In this document: piece after piece, positions 5,258-63,194 of the stretch
Layout: each line of letters opens with the position of its first letter
How positions within the stretch are numbered: the first letter of the stretch is position 1
Source: Chrysemys picta bellii
Taxonomy: Eukaryota
Direction of reading: 5' to 3'
Assembly: GCF_011386835.1 (NCBI RefSeq)
Contig: NC_088802.1
Coordinates: 9,672,001 to 9,736,000, forward strand
DNA: 64,000 nt
Translations under genes and position numbers: made by a program
The notes under the pieces: model-generated
What the model saw: only the letters and a program-made list of their open reading frames with translations
Told to the model about the DNA's origin: nothing
Databases searched by the model: none

Positions 5258-5550
5258 AGGGCACGTCTTCACTACCCACCGGATCGGCAGGTAGCAATCG
5301 ATCTATTGGGGATCGACTTATCGCGTCTAGTGAAGACGCGATAAAATCAATCCCCGATGGCTCTGCCGTCGACTCCGGAAATCCACTGCGGCAAGAGGCA
5401 GAAGCGGATTCGACGGCGGCGTGGCAGTGGTCGACTCGCCGCCAGGTAAGTCAACCTAAAATACGCAACTTCAGCTATGCTATTCATGTAGCTGAAGTTG
5501 CGTATCTTAGGTCGACGCCCCCCCCCCCCCCACGTAGTGTAGACCTAGCC
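5258..5550. mobile_element. Non-autonomous DNA transposon (GTCTACACTA-ended family)
   Basis: Ends gggcacgtcttcacta / tagtgtagacctagcc. Related palindromic elements recur near 17.5, 18.6, 22.4, 25.6 and 33.7 kb. Boundaries are approximate. Confidence 0.5.
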
Positions 5551-6214
5551 TAACATACATAGAGGGGAATCTGGAGCAGGGCTAAGCCCTGAACCCAGAT
5601 GCACTGCCTTGACTTCAGAACCATCCTGTCTCTTGCTATATTTTTCCTCTTCATAGAACTAAGCTTTCCTTTTGCATTCTACTCTTAAATTTATACCTTG
5701 CTAAATGGAAGCAGATGGAGGCATTTCCCTACCAATTTATTACCTAATAAACTTTGCATTGGCATAGAATTTTTTGAATGTTTTGTGGCTATTTATTTGG
5801 GAGGAGAGGCAAAGCATCGTTTAGTCTTATATAAATAAAAGTTCCGCTGGTAGAACACTGTACAGGAGTAACTGTGCCAGTGCAGGTGGGAGACCTATTG
5901 CACTCTGTAGCAAAGTTGCTCAGACCTATAACCCTCCAGCACTCCTGCTTCCTAAGACCGCCCCCTTTGCTGATAGAGATTCACAGGTGGTGCTTTAGGG
6001 CCCCATCCCCTTTGCGAGCTTGAGCTAATATCTCACCCAGCTCTATCTTCTGCACACATGAGCATAAAGCACAGAAATCCCATTAGAGGAGCAAGGATAG
6101 AGCTTCAGCATTGCCCCTGCTTTCCCCTTTCTAGGCATAAGGCATACCTACTGAGAACAGCAATCCTTCATCCTCCCATAACCACAAACGGGCAGAGCAG
6201 AGCCCTTCTCACAG

Positions 6215-8888: not shown

Positions 8889-9301
8889 ACCCCATAACGT
8901 TCTCCAGATGAGCGTTAGCACAGATGGCCCCAGTTTTGTTTGATTTCGTTGCATGTGTGTGGAGCCAAAATCCTGGTTGTGAGATGCGAACCCTGCGGTG
9001 AATGGGAAGAAGGAAGGCAAACAGGGGCTGTAGGAACTCGTGTTTCAGAAAGCATTGCATTGTTTACCAGCACTAAAAACCTGTTTTAACACCAGCATTG
9101 GGGTAATCTCGATAAAGTCCCCGGGCTTTATAGCGCTGTCGGCTTTCCCGAACTGCGTATCATAAACTACATTGCTCAACGCTGCTAGTACTTGAATGAA
9201 TGGGGCTTTCTTTGCAACGCAAGTATGTTTCCCTGATTACTGGGGGTTGTCACTTCAACCCTTCCTTACGACACCCGGCACCCAAGCGTTCGCACACAGA
9301 A

Positions 9302-9344
9302 TCCGCTCTTTTGATGAACGCTGGGGGTGGTTCTGAAAAGAACC
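9302..9344 (-). terminator. Histone 3' stem-loop plus HDE (U7 site) of H1-like gene A
   Basis: Minus strand GGTTCTTTTCAGAACC-ACCC at 9344-9329, with purine-rich AAAAGAGC about 17 nt downstream. Confidence 0.9.
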
Positions 9345-9379
9345 GTTTTGGTTTTGTTTTTCGCTCCTGGCCTGAGCCG

Positions 9380-9916
9380 TCACTCCAGAAGGAAGGTGCC
9401 CTTAATAATATCTTCTAAGATTTGCTTCCTGCGCGTTGCCACCGTCCCCCTGATTTTGCCCGGGCTCCCGCTGACCCTCTTGGGCCGTGCAGCAGCCGGT
9501 TTGATTTCCCCGCTGGGGTCATTTGGCCCTGGGGCAGCTGTTCCTGTCTTCGCCGAGCTCTGGCGCCTCTTGGCCGCGGCTGTTTCCCTCGTTTTTGCTT
9601 TGGCGGCGCCGCCTCCCCGCTGGAGCCTGAAAGAGCCCGAGGCGCCGCTGCCGCTGACCCGACGCAGGGCCCCTTGGCTCAGGAGATAACGGAGCACAGC
9701 CTTGATGCGGCCCTTGTTCTTCCGCACGTCGTATCCCTCGCCCTCCAGCGTCTTCTTGATGGCGGCAAGAGAGACGCCTCTGCCGGCAGCGGGGACAGCA
9801 GCAGCCCGGAGAATGACCTGGCTGAGAGTCGGTTTCCTCCTTCTCTTGCGCCGGGGATTCTCCCGAGCCGCGCGGGAGGCCGCAAAAGCCGCGGGGAGAG
9901 AAACTGAACCGGGCAT
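9380..9916 (-). CDS. Divergent, arginine-rich linker histone H1-like protein A (178 aa)
   Basis: Winged-helix motif VSLAAIKKTLEGEGYDVRKNKGRIK...SGSGASGSFRL, intronless, with stem-loop and HDE. ATG 9916 was chosen because the ORF-track ATG at 10099 lies upstream of the H1 promoter elements. Confidence 0.9.
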   Translation of the reverse strand: MPGSVSLPAAFAASRAARENPRRKRRRKPTLSQVILRAAAVPAAGRGVSLAAIKKTLEGEGYDVRKNKGRIKAVLRYLLSQGALRRVSGSGASGSFRLQRGGGAAKAKTRETAAAKRRQSSAKTGTAAPGPNDPSGEIKPAAARPKRVSGSPGKIRGTVATRRKQILEDIIKGTFLLE

Positions 9917-10007
9917 GTCCCTGCGACCCAATCCCAGCTGCTGCCACCCAGACCCGCACGTGGGGCCGCCGCCCTGACACTGAGCCCGGCGGCCGCCACT
10001 CGAGGCC

Positions 10008-10087
10008 AGATAGAGAGCAGAGCCCGACGCAACCGAATCAATCCCCCGCTTTACTCCTGCTCCAGCGCCTCCCCCCAGCCTGTGTTT
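10008..10087 (-). promoter_or_regulatory. H1-type proximal promoter of gene A
   Basis: AC box AAACACA (10087-10081), motif TTGATTCGGTTGCGTC (10041-10026), and the TATA position degenerate (ctgctcTCTATCT vs ctgctcTATATAA in gene E). Confidence 0.75.
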
Positions 10088-49928: not shown

Positions 49929-50071
49929 NNNNNNNNNNNNNNNNNNNNNNNNNNNNNNNNNNNNNNNNNNNNNNNNNNNNNNNNNNNNNNNNNNNNNNNN
50001 NNNNNNNNNNNNNNNNNNNNNNNNNNNNNNNNNNNNNNNNNNNNNNNNNNNNNNNNNNNNNNNNNNNNNNN
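49929..50071. other. Assembly gap (143 N)
   Basis: Run of N characters. The true distance and orientation across the gap are not guaranteed. Confidence 0.99.
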
Positions 50072-56641: not shown

Positions 56642-57507
56642 CACTGAATGTAGTATCAAGAACTAAGGCTGTGTCTGTTTTTGCCTTCCTATCCCCTTTA
56701 TAGGAACAGGCATAGCAAATTCTCCCTGACACAGATAGGAAGAAACTTCTGATAATACATTAGCCCTACTCTTCATTCTAGCTAGCTATTGTTAGCTACG
56801 GGGATTTCCTTTAAATTTTACCCACATTTGGTTTCCTTCATTGATCTATATGATCTTCATGATAGAAAACACTGCAAAGGGAGCACTGATTGCAGGTAAT
56901 GCATATTCCACCGGTTTACAATGCATATAATTCCATAGTGTGTGCATACAACAAAATAAGAATTTGTCTCAGTATGTGGCCAGCTAAGAAGTATACAGCT
57001 CCACTGGGTATCTATGTATATGGGATATGTTCATTTGCACATTTCTGAAAATTTGTTCCTTAAATGAGAAAAGTTCAGATACATAAACGGGAGATTTTCA
57101 TGGCCGTTAAACTCAGAGTTGGGAGTCTTCATTAGAATTAGGCTATTCCAGTTAGGCCTAATTGTTATTTGTGACTTTGAAGCTCTTTCTTTAAAAGTCT
57201 ACAAGGACAAAAGGATGCAGAGTTACAGGAGAATTAAGAGCACAGTCATGAAGGATCTCACTGCTGCAGGGCTTTGTGTAATTTTTTTGGCAGGTGAATG
57301 TATTGCTTAATGTTTGTAATCCTCAGCCAAACACATTTGTCATGTAGTTACATAGCCCAGTTTTGTGACCTATCCCAGACAGCAACTCATAAATATTTCG
57401 GACAACGCCAGCGGGGGAACTAGCTCAGTGCCCTGGAGCGGGGAGGGCGAAAGGATTGTGCAAATCGGGGCTGGTGCTTTTGGGGGGCAACATGAGTGGG
57501 ACGGAAG

Positions 57508-57590
57508 AAACACAGGCTGGGGGGAGGCGCAGGGGCAGGAGTAAAGCGGGGGATTGATTCGGTTGCGTCGGGCTCTGCTCTCTATCTGGC
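57508..57590 (+). promoter_or_regulatory. H1-type promoter of gene B
   Basis: AAACACA at 57508-57514, TTGATTCGGTTGCGTC at 57554-57569, and a degenerate TATA position as in gene A. Confidence 0.75.
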
Positions 57591-57678
57591 CTCGAGCGGC
57601 GGCCGCCGGGCTCAGTGTCAGGGCGGCGGCCCCACGTGCGGGTCTGGGTGGCAGCAGCTGGGATTGGGTCGCAGGGAC

Positions 57679-58215
57679 ATGCCCGGTTCGCTTCGTCTCC
57701 CCGCGGCTTTTGCGGCCTCCCGCGCGGCTCGGGAGAATCCCCGGCGCAAGAGAAGGAGGAAACCGACTCTCAGCCAGGTCATTCTCCGGGCTGCTGCTGT
57801 CCCCGCCGCCGGCAGAGGCGTCTCTCTTGCCGCCATCAAGAAGACGCTGGAGGGCGAGGGATACGACGTGCGGAAGAACAAGGGCCGCATCAAGGCTGTG
57901 CTCCGTTATCTCCTGAGCCAAGGGGCCCTGCGTCGGGTCAGCGGCAGCGGCGCCTCGGGCTCTTTCAGGCTCCAGCGGGGAGGCGGCGCCGCCAAAGCAG
58001 AAACGAGGGAAACAGCCGCGGCCAAGAGGCGCCAGAGCTCGGCGAAGACAGGAACAGCTGCCCCAGGGCCAAATGACCCCAGCGGGGAAATCAAACCGGC
58101 TGCTGCACGGCCCAAGAGGGTCAGCAGGAGCCCGGGCAAAATCAGGGGGACGGTGGCAACGCGCAGGAAGCAAATCTTAGAAGATATTATTAAGGGCACC
58201 TTCCTTCTGGAGTGA
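57679..58215 (+). CDS. Arginine-rich H1-like protein B (178 aa), near-identical inverted copy of gene A
   Basis: Differs from gene A at 4 residues (VS/LR near the start, K/E, G/R), or 7 nt differences in 537 by hand count. Stem-loop and HDE are present. Confidence 0.9.
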   Translation: MPGSLRLPAAFAASRAARENPRRKRRRKPTLSQVILRAAAVPAAGRGVSLAAIKKTLEGEGYDVRKNKGRIKAVLRYLLSQGALRRVSGSGASGSFRLQRGGGAAKAETRETAAAKRRQSSAKTGTAAPGPNDPSGEIKPAAARPKRVSRSPGKIRGTVATRRKQILEDIIKGTFLLE

Positions 58216-58250
58216 CGGCTCAGGCCAGGAGCGAAAAACAAAACCAAAAC

Positions 58251-58290
58251 GGTTCTTTTCAGAACCACCCCCAGCGTTCATCAAAAGAGC
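58251..58290 (+). terminator. Histone stem-loop plus HDE of gene B
   Basis: GGTTCTTTTCAGAACC-ACCCC at 58251-58266 and AAAAGAGC at 58283-58290. Confidence 0.9.
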
Positions 58291-58695
58291 GAATGTCTTT
58301 GCTCCTTGGTGCTATATTTTGTAACGCGGCTTTTTTTAGAGATTAGGGAGGGTTGTGTGTGTTGTATGTATTCCTAGAATAGAAAGCAAACGGCAGCACT
58401 ACCATTGATGAATGCATTTTATGATAGGCAGGTCAGGGAAAACCAACAACACCAGGACAAGGCAGGGAACCTTCAAGATTAGTTAGATCCTGCCATTGAA
58501 TTAACTGACTTAAAATAAAGGGGGGTTGACCTTATTTTGTTGTTTTTTTGATTTGGTAAAGAAGGCAACTGACCCACGTTTATATGGTTTTCACCTTCCC
58601 TAACGCCTAGGATCTGGTCCTAGACAAATACAGAAAAAATGTTTTTTTAAAGGTATATTTGTGCTAACGTTCTTTTAGGGAAAGTTTTTGGGGGT

Positions 58696-58711
58696 GGCTC
58701 TTAAAAGAGCC
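58696..58711 (-). terminator. Histone stem-loop of pseudo-H1 D
   Basis: Minus strand GGCTCTTTTAAGAGCC-ACCCC. Confidence 0.85.
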
Positions 58712-58762
58712 TTTGGATTGATTGATTTTTTTCGGTAGAATGAGTCAGTAGAATTATGCCTT

Positions 58763-59258
58763 TTAGGGCTTCCCCTCGAGAGATGTTTCCCACTGCATAA
58801 AGGATACAGAAGCGACAGTTTCTCCAGTTCCCTCTTCCTGATCCACAAGAGCCTCTGCTTTCTTCTTGGCTTTTTTCTTCGCTGCTTTTTTGTTCCTCTT
58901 GCCCCCTGCTTCTTTGGCGATTTGTCCTTCTTCACCAGCGGAGGGGTTAGCTTCGCTTCTGCGATGAGCTTGTAGGAGCCCGGGACCTTAAGCAAGACAT
59001 TCGTGGTGACCAGCTTCCCAAGCTCCGCTTTGATACGGGCTTTGTTCTTCTTAACATCGATCCCCGCCGCCGCCAGCTCTTTCCTGATGACGCCCAGGGA
59101 GACCTCCCCGGAGTGCTGGGAGAAATCCACGGTCTGGAGAATGAAATGGGCAAAACCTTCGCGGTCTTTTCGAGTTATCGGTACCGCCTTCCTCTTCTTC
59201 CGCTTCGTTCTCTTGCTGGCTGGCGCCTGGGAAGGGGCAGCGGCTGATCTGTGTTCAT
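58763..59258 (-). pseudogene. Frameshifted H1-like gene D (same subfamily as C)
   Basis: ATG AAC ACA (MNT, as in gene C) at 59258 is out of frame with the globular domain (VSLGVIRKELAAAGIDVKKNKARIK). A second shift near 58.9 kb is needed to reach KRNKKAAKKKAKKK...ASVSFMQWETSLEGKP*. There is no in-frame ATG before the upstream TAG at 59310. Confidence 0.8.
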
Positions 59259-59982
59259 CTGGGTAGATACAAGAGGCGCCGCGTTTTCTATTTTTGATAG
59301 TTGTTCTCTACTTGCTACGGCGCCGCCTGCACCTCACGCTGCAGCAGATTGAAAGCCGGGCACTGCTGCTGCAGCCCGAGGGGTAGTTATACCCCAGTGT
59401 CTGACGCAACCGAATCAACCTGGTTCTATCCCCGCCTCTCTCTGGTCCTCTAGCACTAATAACCCGTGTTATGTTCGCCTGGTGACGCTGTTTCGTTCAC
59501 TCAATCTCTGTCAGGGAAAATATACAAAAATCTCGAATCTGCTCCCCGGCTAAGGAAGCCAATAAACAAAAATCGTGATTTTTCTCCAAATTATTGTTAA
59601 AATTCCATCATTTTCTCAGGATAGTCTAGGAGAAGAGAAGGGTTTACACACTATGGCATTTTAAATCCATGACAGATACTTTGGAGGCGGGGAAACATTG
59701 GTTCTATTTTTGCTTGGTTTCCCGGATGAGCTAATGAAAAGGAGAAATGTTTGGATCCTTAATTACATATCAAGAAGGCGAGGCTGATGGGTAGATACAG
59801 AAGTGAAGGGTGAGACCTGTACTAGCGAAAGGTTAGGTGGTAGGCGGTCTCAGTGTCCCTTCAGGTCTGCCACTATTTAATACATGGGAACTCCGCGATC
59901 CTACGTTTCGTTTTTTTTTTTTTTTTTTTGGGGGGGGGTTGTTTGTTTGTTTGTTTTTGTAGGGAAAAGAATAGGGAGAAAG

Positions 59983-60272
59983 GTGTGTGTTTGTACGATG
60001 AAGAAATGTAGACAGATGCTGATTGGTGATGTCTCAAAGAAGGGTGCGGAAAAAGAGTAGGAAAGCGTTTTATTCCGCATACCTGTAAGAGATGCTGAAG
60101 TAGGTTCACATGGGCACTCGGGCATGTTTTCTAAGGTCCTGAGCATCTTGAATTCTGCCGCAAATTATCTGTCTGAGCGCATTGCCACAGAATTTATCGT
60201 GCCTGTCCGTATACAGCAAGCTCTGGGAAGTCAGCTACAGGAAAGTCGAGGCTGCTTGGATCTTGGTCTGAA
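59983..60272 (+). pseudogene. Histone H2B pseudogene of the same variant lineage
   Basis: KKCRQMLIGDVSKK (cf. [14 protein letters not shown]), KSRKAFYSAYL*EMLK*VH, SGMFSKVLSILNSAANYLSERIATE and SCLSVYSK...SYRKVEAA, with stops and frameshifts. The start appears as GTG. Promoter relics ccttaattacatatc and tcaggtc lie upstream. Confidence 0.8.
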
Positions 60273-60611
60273 GCGTGAGTGGGTTTGTCCTTTCTAGTCC
60301 CGTCCCCCCCGTCTCTTCCCTTTCCCTGTAATGCTAAGTGTCAATGATCTTGTTATTTATATAACTAGCCAATCCTAAAGTCTTTTCCTCAATAATTTTG
60401 AGTCCTGCTGGGTATTTATTCCGTTAAATCATTCTTGTCCGTTTTAAAGTTATTCCATTTCGATGATATGGTTATGTTGGATGACACCTTGGTCCTGTAA
60501 TGTGAGACAGCAAATGTAGCACCTGAATTATCAACTTCAATCAAACCATTACTTTCCACCCCAATAGGCGTGTGCTGGGAACTCGACATTTGAGGCACCC
60601 ATAGCCTCTAG

Positions 60612-60836
60612 GTTTCAGAGTAACAGCCGTGTTAGTCTGTATCCGCAAAAAGAAGAACAGGAGTACTTGTGGCACCTTAGAGACTAACACATTTATTAGA
60701 GCATAAGCTTTCGTGGACTACAGCCCACTGAAGAAGTGGGCTGTAGTCCCATCCGAAGAAGTGGGCTGTAGCCCACGAAAGCTTATGCTCTAATAAATGT
60801 GTTAGTCTCTAAGGTGCCACAAGTACTCCTGTTCTT
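60612..60836. mobile_element. Penelope-like terminal remnant forming a long hairpin
   Basis: 77-bp inverted arms at 60653-60729 and 60760-60836 with one mismatch. The sequence resembles the 3' end of the GIY-YIG element. Confidence 0.75.
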
Positions 60837-61653
60837 CCCATAGCCTCTAGACACTTTTGCAGATTATAGGCTAATACCTTTAAACCAGACGCATAAAACA
60901 ATCGGGATCTAAATACAACGAAATAAAATAAAATGCCTCTATTGTAAAACCCAAAGTATGATATCAAAATTAGCTTCCCCTTTTACTAAAAACCTAAACC
61001 TTAAAACAATATAATTATTTTCCAAACACATGAAAATAATTATTCTTCCTCCCTGTTACATTTTTTTCTGCATGTGTATCCTATAGTTTTCTGCAACTTT
61101 TGCTCTTTCTACTGAAGTTAATGGATGTTTTGACATTAATTTCAGCCAGGTGAATGAGAGTAGGATGCATCCCTATATAAATTAAAACAGCAGTACGTTT
61201 AAAGTACATTGTAATGTTTTACTATGACAGAAAACTAGAGATATTTATTTCCTTTTGAAATTAGACAAAGCCTCATAGGCGAGTATGGGGAAGCCTAGGT
61301 GTGTTTCTTGTTTGTCTTTGGAAGGGCACTGCACAAAAAAACAAAGAAAGAAATCATTTAATTTCTTTGTGTGGGATACCTCACTCCGCCTTAATACTGT
61401 TCCCTCGATATCTTGAGGGCAGGCACAGAATTGAAATTGTAATTTAAGATTAAACCCAAATTTTGTTTACTTTTGGAGGACAGGCAGGTGGATAAATCGA
61501 GGGTTTTGTCGATTTCTGGCGCGGGGAGCTTATTCAGTGGATCAAAAAAATGCAGCGAATAAAACCACCTAACAGTCCTAGCCTGGGGACGTCTACGTTA
61601 ATTGATCAAAAAGCCAGTGGGGCTTTTAAAATTAGAGATCAGTGGAGTTTCAG

Positions 61654-61781
61654 AAACACAGATTTCTGAGACGCTAGGAGGCAAGGAGAGGCTGATTGAT
61701 TCTGTTGCGTCCGCCGTCGGGGGAGGCGGTGCGCGCGGCGACCTGGTTGAGTCGGTTGCGTCGGGTTCTGCTCTATATAAA
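61654..61781 (+). promoter_or_regulatory. H1-type promoter of gene E
   Basis: AAACACA at 61654-61660, two one-mismatch copies of the 16-mer (61696-61711 and 61747-61762), TATATAAA at 61774-61781, and a TG-box-like TGTGTTT at 61300. Confidence 0.8.
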
Positions 61782-61860
61782 GCCCGTTAGGCGACCTGCG
61801 CGATCAGTTTGGAGCGGAGAGTCGTGGAAGCTTCGTGGGAGCTTGTCGCTTTGCAGCTCA

Positions 61861-61938
61861 GAGGCGGCGGCGGCGGCGGGAGCAGCAGCAGCAGCAGCGG
61901 TTGCAGCGAGGCGGCGGCGGTTGCGGCGGCGGTGGCGG
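61861..61938 (+). repeat. GGC/GCA trinucleotide repeat tract in the presumed 5' UTR of gene E
   Basis: gaggcggcggcggcggcgggagcagcagcagcagcagcggttgcagcgaggcggcggcggttgcggcggcggtggcgg lies between the TATA box and the ATG. Confidence 0.8.
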
Positions 61939-61968
61939 TTCTTGTGGCTGTGAATACAGTGGGGAGAA

Positions 61969-62505
61969 ATGCGAAATTTAAGCTCCGCCTCCCAGGCTTC
62001 TCTCTCAGAAGGGGCTCTAGCTACTTTTCTACCTAAGAAGAAAGGGAGGCCGTCTCTTCCCGACCTCATTCTGCGGGCTGTTTGCGTCTCTACAGCCCGC
62101 AAGGGCGCCTCTCTGGCTGCCATCAAGAAGGCGCTCTTGGCCGAGGGGTACGACGTGCAGAAGAACAACGGTCGCCTGAAGGCGACGCTCAGCTCTCTCG
62201 TTAGCAAAGGGCTGCTGCAGCGGGTGACGGGCAGCGGCGTCTCGGGATCCTTCAGGGTCAACAAGCGCCAGAAGAAGGGGGGCGCCTTGAAAGCAACGAA
62301 GAAAAAAACCGCCGTCAAGAGACCCAAAACCCAGATAGCGGCCCGGAGGTCTCCGAAAAAAATTAACCTCACAGCAGCTAGGAAGGCAAAGGGGCCCGGC
62401 AGGGAAACCAAGTCAGCTGTTAAAAAACCCAAGGCCCACAAAAACCCGGCCAGACCCAAGGGGAGGGCTGCCCCCCGCGGCAAAGCTGGAGGCAAGAGGC
62501 ATTAA
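61969..62505 (+). CDS. Divergent H1-like protein E (178 aa)
   Basis: Globular domain GASLAAIKKALLAEGYDVQKNNGRLKATLSSLVSKGLLQRVTGSGVSGSFRV with a basic tail, full promoter and stem-loop/HDE. Confidence 0.92.
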   Translation: MRNLSSASQASLSEGALATFLPKKKGRPSLPDLILRAVCVSTARKGASLAAIKKALLAEGYDVQKNNGRLKATLSSLVSKGLLQRVTGSGVSGSFRVNKRQKKGGALKATKKKTAVKRPKTQIAARRSPKKINLTAARKAKGPGRETKSAVKKPKAHKNPARPKGRAAPRGKAGGKRH

Positions 62506-62543
62506 AAACACATTCCTCGTCAACTAATAAATATAAACTCAAA

Positions 62544-62585
62544 GGCTCTTTTAAGAGCCACCCTCAATATTCACTAAGTGAGCTG
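62544..62585 (+). terminator. Histone stem-loop plus HDE of gene E
   Basis: GGCTCTTTTAAGAGCC-ACCC at 62544-62559 and AAGTGAGCTG downstream. Confidence 0.9.
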
Positions 62586-63194
62586 TTGGTTCGCCGGGAG
62601 AGCATAGGCGGTGCGGCGTGAGCTTTTACCGACAAAGAGGCTTCTTGGAGGGAAATCTTTGATTTGGCATTTTATTCTGTATTTTACTAACAAGATTGCC
62701 TAGGACAATGTAAAAAACTCGAAAATTTCCTATTGAAAAATATTCCAAGTTGATTTTTAAAGTAATCAATAAAATTGTCCTCCCTAGAAAAAAAGTTACG
62801 TGAAAAAAATCTTCACGTAAACAAATACTTGAAAATGATCGTTTTACTCCGCAGTAATGATCAAAATTGTAACCTCAATCCACTTATTACGGATTTTATA
62901 TCCACATTTGTCGTTTAACGATTCTAGCAGCGAACTAGAGCCCGGACTTTCGCTGGTGCCTGTTTCCTATCAGGTCCGGCGGTAACTTACTGCCCAATGA
63001 AAGTGCAGGCCTCCTTCCCCTGACCAGCCCCTGTCCTCCCCCCACAAACGCTCTACCAGTTATTTCATCCAATTAGCACCCGCCCTTGCCGCTATACATG
63101 AGGTCAAAGTTGTACCGTATTTCCCGTTGTGGTTATTTGATTGCGGTTTTCTGTTTTTGTGGTGTAGCGATGGTGAGACATTCACTGTCTGGTT

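Follow-up and report, generated by a model that had tools for sequence, protein, structure and literature searches.

What is encoded by a gene that resembles those of H1 linker histones but whose product has more arginine than lysine and ends in hydrophobic and acidic residues? The question is raised by a 64,000-nucleotide stretch of the Chrysemys picta bellii genome (NC_088802.1, positions 9,672,001 to 9,736,000; here called the window), which carries two copies of such a gene, copy A (window positions 9380 to 9916) and copy B, along with three further H1-like genes, referred to as paralogues C, D, and E. A reading of the letters alone (the sequence-only reading) had proposed that copies A and B encode an H1-derived protein of spermatids or sperm. 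To our knowledge, detailed descriptions of germ-cell linker-histone variants are confined to mammals, Xenopus, Drosophila, and some invertebrates, and reptiles and birds are almost blank. The analyses below suggest that the gene is likely to encode a functional, specialized H1 variant with restricted expression. Also favored, if a little less firmly, is the view that A and B are duplicates of a single functional, intronless gene for a turtle linker-histone variant and that gene conversion has kept them alike.

Copies A and B encode an H1 with a shift from lysine to arginine

By script count, the copy A protein is 178 amino acids long with 24 Arg and 16 Lys residues, the figures that had previously been obtained by hand. 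The copy B protein is of the same length with 26 Arg and 15 Lys, and the two copies differ at 7 nucleotides and 4 amino acids. Other features noted earlier were also recovered, namely an RRKRRRK tract at residues 22 to 28 of copy A, immediately ahead of the globular domain, a sole [ST]PxK motif (SPGK, residue 151), and a terminus whose last 14 residues (165 to 178) read QILEDIIKGTFLLE.

Pfam PF00538 (Linker_histone) matched residues 28 to 98 of copy A (E value, 1.3e-12). Among PDB sequences, copy A scored 58 bits with chicken GH1 and 48 to 55 bits with human H1.1-H1.4, compared with 18 to 30 bits for H5 and H1.0 and 17 bits for H1x. An AlphaFold (AF2) model generated with 19 relatives as input gave a predicted local distance difference test score (pLDDT) of about 85 across the globular domain and low values at residues 1 to 25 and 102 to 154, which predicts disordered N- and C-terminal domains. 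Using Foldseek, the modeled globular domain was superimposed on nucleosome-bound H1.2, H1.1, and H1.4 with template modeling (TM) scores of 0.84 to 0.89 and root mean square deviations of 1.5 to 1.7 Å, at 49 to 51% identity. Judging from this model, the globular domain should sit on the nucleosome as that of H1.2 or H1.4 does.

Copy A therefore has the tripartite layout of an H1, with a globular core between disordered basic terminal domains, although its C-terminal domain (CTD) is just 22% basic. The CTD comprises 78 amino acids, of which 17 are basic, half of them Arg, and has a net charge of +11, whereas that of paralogue E has 29 basic residues in 78 (37%) and a net charge of +28. The N-terminal domain of copy A has a net charge of +7, and the protein as a whole is 22% basic. 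The Lys-dominated composition expected of linker histones (the "very lysine-rich histone") was not found. A-type turtle proteins had R/(R+K) values of 0.57 to 0.64, compared with 0.38 for paralogue E (17 Arg and 30 Lys) and 0.27 for paralogue C. A full HMMER search returned 366 representatives at an E value of ≤0.001, and composition was compared in the best 150 of these together with the first hits. In this set, R/(R+K) had a median of 0.23 among the 100 proteins from the canonical side of the tree, and a single one of these had more Arg than Lys. Thus, with the Pfam match, the Foldseek fit, and this comparison with canonical H1s, the product of A and B is a real H1 winged-helix linker histone with a true Lys-to-Arg shift, as the sequence-only reading had it.

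The possibility that the Arg-rich tail arose by frameshift, with AAG and AAA Lys codons read as AGA and AGG, was rejected. The CTD of A aligned with that of E in frame 0 (z = 4.2), with the remaining frames giving z values below 0.2, which indicates that the shift came about through point substitutions.

The globular domain and the C-terminal end are under purifying selection

A word search identified full-length orthologues sharing 83 to 95% identity in Emys, Chelonoidis, Gopherus, Eretmochelys, Mauremys, Terrapene, and Chelydra, a relative with 59% identity in the side-necked turtle Pelusios, and a match limited to the globular domain in Alligator. The genomic open reading frames (ORFs) were intact in 7 of 7 cryptodiran turtles, synteny beside an H3-like gene was conserved, and the three indels among the orthologues were all in frame. 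Counts on the species tree gave 52.8 synonymous and 73.2 nonsynonymous changes, an omega (dN/dS) of 0.51 (p = 1.5e-4). No nonsense changes were found, against 3 to 5 expected under neutrality.

When the protein was divided by region, omega was 0.32 for the globular domain (p = 6e-4) and 0.22 for residues 158 to 178 (p = 0.011); the values for the N-terminus (0.65) and tail (0.79) were not significant. Purifying selection thus acts on the globular domain and on the last ∼21 residues, with the N-terminus and tail near neutral. Selection on the C-terminal end is as expected for a functional module. The end TVATRRKQILEDIIKGxFLLE was retained in all cryptodiran species (Emys, Chelonoidis, Gopherus, Mauremys, Eretmochelys, and Chelydra), and the Pelusios sequence, seen as a gene model only, diverges from it after RRK. 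No look-alikes of the C-terminal 29 residues were found in the ESM Atlas.

Duplication and gene conversion

Self-BLAST placed A and B in blocks that are 97.9% identical over about 950 bp, inverted, and 47 kb apart, with unrelated flanks. Block A is a CpG island (GC content, 0.62; CpG observed/expected ratio, 0.80) lying in flanks with a GC content of 0.39 to 0.45, and the island is limited to the transcription unit. Copy A is arranged head to head with a divergent H3-like gene, a context also found in Emys, Eretmochelys, two Mauremys species, and Chelydra. The context of copy B (an H2B variant, C, B, D, and E) was found in Gopherus, and the sequence at the 5′ boundary of B is common to the Gopherus copy in this context. 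Copies A and B differ by a synonymous divergence (dS) of 0.014, compared with about 0.10 when B is set against the Gopherus copy. The shared boundary, coupled with the low dS between A and B, points to an old duplication kept alike by gene conversion.

Promoter elements and 3′ end

A 16-bp box, TTGATTCGGTTGCGTC, lies upstream of each of the five H1-like genes in the window (6 matches versus 0.31 expected). Exactly 11 nucleotides past this box, paralogues C, D, and E carry the TATA boxes TATAATTAGC, TATAACTACC, and TATATAAAGC, respectively, whereas copies A and B have TCTATCTGGC at the same position, so that the loss of the TATA consensus reported earlier for both copies was borne out. The same non-TATA state was found in 6 of 6 other turtle species, and the loss is therefore ancestral rather than particular to A and B. 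The H1 box AAGAAACACA is exact in copy A and invariant across all turtle orthologues, and the CCAAT position is occupied by the 16-bp family box. Of the canonical H1 promoter (H1 box, CCAAT, and TATA), A and B thus retain the H1 box alone. The 320 bp upstream of the gene diverges by 0.09 to 0.11, compared with 0.08 to 0.14 in more distant flanks; promoter-wide constraint was therefore rejected, and only the discrete boxes count as conserved. Gene E is preceded by two of the 16-bp boxes (61696-61711 and 61747-61762, plus strand; one mismatch each), and its TATA box lies at 11 nucleotides only after the second.

Downstream, the stem-loop GGTTCT-TTTC-AGAACC lies 35 nucleotides past the stop codon, fits the pattern GGYYYU-UUUC-ARRRCC, and is followed by the purine-rich downstream element CAAAAGAGC. 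Both elements were invariant in 8 sequences in which adjacent bases vary. The gene accordingly has the anatomy of a replication-dependent histone gene, being intronless with a 3′ stem-loop and histone downstream element, and its mRNA should be processed via the stem-loop-binding protein (SLBP) and U7 like those of cluster histones. The sense mRNA would start about 30 nucleotides past the TCTATCTGG element and end at the stem-loop cleavage site.

Transcription

A run search identified the duplicated block in 14 small contig sets (56 to 285 Mb, transcriptome-sized) from 5 studies and 3 coded organisms, and no part of it was present in six other small sets that carry the same species label. The contig sets are coded for run and tissue, unstranded, and without expression level. 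Four sets were mapped on 57000-62700. In these, contigs covered the block (57354-58291) and gene E (starting at 61943 or 61775), and 58337-58718, 59674-60437, and 61202-61774 had no contigs in any of the four runs. The rest of the intergenic DNA, aside from a repeat at about 60600-60960, had few low-depth scraps. Random genomic DNA would be distributed differently, and the gene is therefore transcribed, although some of the RNA-like data sets lack it. Contigs from runs X1 and X3 carried A-type letters at diagnostic sites. Of the outcomes that would have told against the sequence-only reading, a gene with neither expression nor a conserved ORF was not what was seen. When Logan contigs were searched for the exact proteins of copies A and B, only the genome record (assembly GCA_011386835.2) was returned.

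Unaligned 5′ contig letters in gene E had raised the possibility of a splice acceptor at 61943, which was rejected, as the site has a GGC repeat and no AG. The short repeat at 60610-60960 was covered to a depth in the thousands by many contigs in 4 of 4 RNA-like runs and is probably an expressed element resembling a short interspersed element (SINE).

Relatives of the A-type proteins

A tree of 72 globular domains (72 columns) was built with IQ-TREE. It contained a clade of Alligator, A-type turtle proteins (including that of the pleurodire Pelusios), E-type turtle proteins, and birds (parrots, ducks and geese, owls, and potoo) with support of 99/94, within which the A-type clade was supported at 100/100. 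A 97/89 split set the A/E/alligator/bird clade apart from canonical and chondrichthyan H1s. The same side of the split also held a monotreme and lizard group, paralogue C, mammalian H1.9/HILS1, and a turtle/crocodile H1.9-like group, and the helix-1 motif IL[RW][AS] was almost exclusive to this non-canonical side. More Arg than Lys was found in 8 of 8 A-type, 10 of 10 bird, and 7 of 12 H1.9 proteins; R/(R+K) was 0.56 to 0.86 in the bird relatives and 0.52 in Alligator, with a median of 0.51 in mammalian H1.9. Among the bird members (P0034, P0027, P0057, P0141, and P0086; R/(R+K) up to 0.86), many have Ala/Glu-rich acidic ends, a second and apparently independent non-basic C-terminal end in the family.

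The closest comparison is with the archelosaur E-type H1s of the 99/94 clade (turtle E; the Alligator sinensis H1.01-like protein P0017; and the duck, parrot, owl, and potoo proteins P0034, P0028, P0141, and P0086). These have in common with A the helix-1 sequence ILRA, the 16-bp promoter box, and a position beside a divergent H3-like gene (alligator locus L007). The bird and alligator members are Arg-rich like A, whereas turtle E is Lys-rich. A differs from the E type in having lost the TATA box and in the lower net charge of its CTD (+11 versus +28 in turtle E), and the end RRKQILEDIIKGxFLLE is found in the A type alone. The best explanation is that the A type is restricted to turtles and derived from an E-type H1 variant common to turtles, crocodilians, and birds. 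At the alligator locus (5484-5831, minus strand, and 10001-10474, plus strand), an E-like H1 and a divergent H3-like ORF with 41% identity to the turtle H3-like protein lie on opposite strands about 4 kb apart. The head-to-head pair thus seems to predate the turtle-crocodilian split.

H1.9/HILS1 and A are both Arg-rich, with a short CTD, a divergent globular domain, and ILRA or ILWA in helix 1, and they lie on the same side of the 97/89 split in the best tree (p = 0.37 for the alternative in the test described below). A is located in a histone/TRIM cluster and has a histone stem-loop, whereas rat Hils1 lies within an intron of Sgca (PMC6069787), and the C-terminal ends are unrelated. An H1.9-like gene of Gopherus evgoodei (P0150), Chelydra (P0162), and Crocodylus porosus (P0091/P0189) groups with mammalian H1.9/HILS1 (98/90), and HILS1-like genes may therefore not be exclusive to mammals. 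Since turtles and crocodiles have this separate, closer gene, A is not an H1.9 orthologue.

Likeness to H1t, suggested by the sequence-only reading, did not hold. Like A, the H1t/H1.6 gene lies in a cluster, lacks introns, and has an H1 box and histone stem-loop. The Arg content of H1t is somewhat raised, and the protein is Lys-dominated nonetheless; we know of no hydrophobic-acidic end in H1t. The H1t representative (P0023) fell inside the canonical mammalian H1 clade (100/87), away from A, and A was therefore rejected as an H1t/H1.6 orthologue.

A second proposed likeness, to the protamine-like protein PL-I, was also abandoned. A shares with PL-I an H1-type winged helix and raised Arg, on which the idea of an H1-to-PL-to-protamine succession rests (PMC11607694). 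In PL-I, the globular domain is related to the H5/H1.0 type (PMC11607694), whereas that of A is nearer to GH1 and H1.1-H1.4 (48 to 58 bits) than to H5/H1.0 (18 to 30 bits), and with 22% basic residues A is not a sperm-packaging protein of the PL type. The same source cites Kasinsky's hypothesis, in which internal fertilization restricts amniote sperm proteins to true protamines (PMC11607694).

Literature searches on reptile HILS1, turtle testis H1, and the automatic H1-like names found no description of this H1 family. Its database names are automatic only ("histone H1.4-like," "H1.11R-like," and "H1.01-like"), and a crocodile blood-cell proteome entry, "histone H1.01-like," could not be attributed to it.

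Possible function and alternative explanations

Turtles keep under selection an H1 with two departures from the usual pattern, an excess of Arg over Lys and a hydrophobic-acidic, predicted helical end in place of a basic one. New in A and B are the short, low-charge tail, half of whose basic residues are Arg, and the constrained hydrophobic-acidic end. Expression would most likely be restricted to germ cells; the private promoter box, the non-canonical histone neighbors, and the patchy presence in RNA sets make germline expression plausible. A spermatogenic role in particular is a possibility rather than a probability. If the gene is germline-specific, A and B would be a sauropsid counterpart to HILS1 and H1t, would test whether a Lys-to-Arg shift on an H1 scaffold recurs in sperm chromatin remodeling, and would offer, in the C-terminal module, a defined probe for partners. 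If it is somatic, they would be merely a curious minor subtype.

Given a short CTD that is 22% basic, with half of the basic residues Arg, A should condense chromatin weakly and have dynamics unlike those of somatic H1. Weak condensation of this kind has been reported for H1.9/HILS1, a poor condenser (PMC6069787). The end RRKQILEDIIKGxFLLE may act as a short helix that docks a partner protein, such as a chaperone, a transport factor, or another chromatin protein; alternatively, it could fold back on the basic regions and mask them. Its L-xxx-I-xxx-F-x-L spacing resembles an export-signal pattern, which is only a lead. A wider scenario appears more doubtful than likely. In it, A and B would be the turtle member of an ancient amniote H1.9-like germline superfamily (HILS1, monotreme and lizard H1-like proteins, and archelosaur variants) and would act as a weakly condensing transition linker histone of spermatids. 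The C-terminal helix, fitting Phi-xxx-Phi-xxx-Phi-x-Phi (L-EDI-I-KGT-F-L-L), would recruit a partner for removal or export during the histone-to-protamine exchange, and the H3, H2B, and H1 neighbors would form a toolkit co-regulated via the 16-bp box. The tree position on the H1.9/HILS1 side is the sole homology-based hint at a spermatid role.

Several observations weigh against a specialized, functional variant or against parts of this interpretation. The tree was built without H1.0, H1.7, H1.8, and H1.10, none of which was among the best 150 relatives, and in an approximately unbiased (AU) test the joining of the archelosaur clade to canonical H1s was not rejected (delta log likelihood, 4.25; p = 0.37), so that the affinity with H1.9 is only suggestive. 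AlphaFold placed a helix at residues 159 to 171 of copy A with moderate confidence (pLDDT of about 69), and its hydrophobic moment was reached by 15% of shuffled sequences. Of the terminal amphipathic helix claimed earlier, the helix thus stands as a prediction, and its amphipathic character was dropped as indistinguishable from shuffles. Relaxed constraint could likewise account for an overall omega of 0.5 and for the near-neutral evolution of the N-terminus and tail, and because turtles evolve slowly, survival of the ORF is on its own weak evidence. The stem-loop scored 30.1 bits with Rfam RF00032, below the gathering score of 34 (local-search E value, 5.3e-7). The unstranded contigs could derive from antisense or read-through RNA, and the X1 contig has 415 and 188 extra letters that do not fit the flanks of B and are presumably the flanks of A. 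The protein is known here from DNA and RNA contigs alone.

Among the alternatives, it is unlikely that A and B encode a maternal, oocyte, or early-embryo H1 of low charge, like H1.8/H1oo/B4 or BigH1, rather than a protein of the male germline. The reduced net charge and acidic C-terminal residues would suit such a protein, as would the patchy presence among RNA-like runs and a cluster of non-canonical histones only, and SLBP-type processing is compatible with oocyte storage. However, the short CTD is unlike the long domains of known oocyte H1s, and no H1.8-type sequence was among the best 150 relatives of the globular domain.

Just as unlikely is a minor somatic, replication-dependent H1 whose Arg excess and odd tail result from relaxed constraint. 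H1 genes of S-phase clusters typically have a stem-loop, downstream element, and H1 box like those of A and B, and the N-terminus and tail are near neutral (omega, 0.65 to 0.79). Conversely, the CCAAT box has been replaced by the family box and TATA lost, the C-terminal end is constrained (omega, 0.22), and only 1 of 100 canonical-side H1s has more Arg than Lys. That six RNA-like runs with the same species label lack the gene also speaks against a somatic H1, although poly(A) selection could explain its absence.

There is only a slim likelihood that the Arg excess reflects base composition rather than functional adaptation, arising through GC-biased conversion of A and B and, in birds, through a GC-rich microchromosome context. 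Gene conversion does take place between A and B, in a block of GC 0.62 set in flanks of 0.39 to 0.45; Gly, Ala, Arg, and Pro make up 0.47 of A, compared with 0.36 to 0.39 of C and E; and the bird relatives with extreme Arg contents also have Ala-rich tails. However, the GC content at third codon positions (GC3) is 0.70 in A, no different from the values for the Lys-rich paralogues (C, 0.69; E, 0.68) and H2B (0.70). The surplus GC thus lies in codon positions 1 and 2, and mutational GC bias is not a simple explanation of the shift, which weakens GC bias as the sole cause. Furthermore, AGG and AGA account for 10 of the 24 Arg codons of copy A, and Lys-to-Arg changes are found inside the constrained globular domain too.

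A decaying or non-functional paralogue, its ORF kept by slow turtle DNA and mutual gene conversion and its RNA mere noise, is very unlikely: pairwise dN/dS values of up to 0.8 to 1.0, 5 nonsynonymous and 2 synonymous differences between A and B, an upstream 320 bp no better conserved than distant flanks, and a neighbor, D, that seems frameshifted are outweighed by a tree-wide omega significantly below 1 (notably in the globular domain and C-terminal end), the absence of stops and the in-frame indels, the invariant stem-loop and downstream element amid varying bases, and the persistence of the A type from Pelusios to emydids.

Cluster composition and other features of the window

The neighbors of A and B are the H3-like gene, the H2B variant, the further H1-like genes, and TRIM/B30.2 genes; the histone genes of the cluster are non-canonical only. 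Coordinates are collected in Table 1. The window contains an assembly gap (49929-50071).

Table 1. Coordinates of the linker-histone genes and associated elements in the window
Feature	Position	Strand	Basis
CDS (coding sequence) of H1 variant copy A, 178 aa + stop, intronless, ATG start	9380..9916	-	ORF list, composition, PF00538, exact protein called on genome record
CDS of copy B, 178 aa, 26 R/15 K, 4 aa differences from A	57679..58215	+	ORF, composition, Pfam
Duplicated block A: promoter, CDS, 3′ end; CpG island	9298..10245	-	Self-BLAST, composition
Duplicated block B, inverted partner 47 kb away (aligned as 58298-57351)	57351..58298	+	Self-BLAST
Globular winged-helix domain, aa 28-100	9617..9835	-	Pfam, AF2, Foldseek, omega
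N-terminal basic tract RRKRRRK, aa 22-28	9833..9853	-	Motif search; R/K-rich in orthologues too
C-terminal QILEDIIKGTFLLE, aa 165-178, within conserved TVATRRKQILEDIIKGxFLLE	9383..9424	-	Orthologues, omega, helix prediction
Histone 3′ stem-loop (stem 9329-9344) + downstream element	9304..9349	-	Rfam RF00032, exact stem
Stem-loop, copy B	58251..58266	+	Exact stem
H1 box AAGAAACACA	copy A 10081..10090; copy B 57505-57514	-; +	Exact match
Family-specific 16-bp box TTGATTCGGTTGCGTC	copy A 10026..10041; copy B 57554-57569	-; +	Shared upstream of all five H1-like genes
TCTATCTGGC at TATA position of paralogues	copy A 10005..10014; copy B 57581-57590	-; +	Alignment with C, D, E
Paralogue E	61969-62505		H1-like gene within window
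H1-like gene D	58675-59130	-	Seems broken

Gene D has no ATG-started N-terminal part and no Pfam match, and its ORF ends inside an Rfam stem-loop match (58672-58716). Its match with Gopherus is split across two frames, and RNA contigs covered it in scraps only. Four database gene models (P0007, P0010, P0012, and P0014) are chimeras in which pieces of C, D, B, or E or an upstream exon are joined to the A/B body; in the one such case checked, in Gopherus (L004, 11999-12532), the intronless ORF was intact in the DNA.

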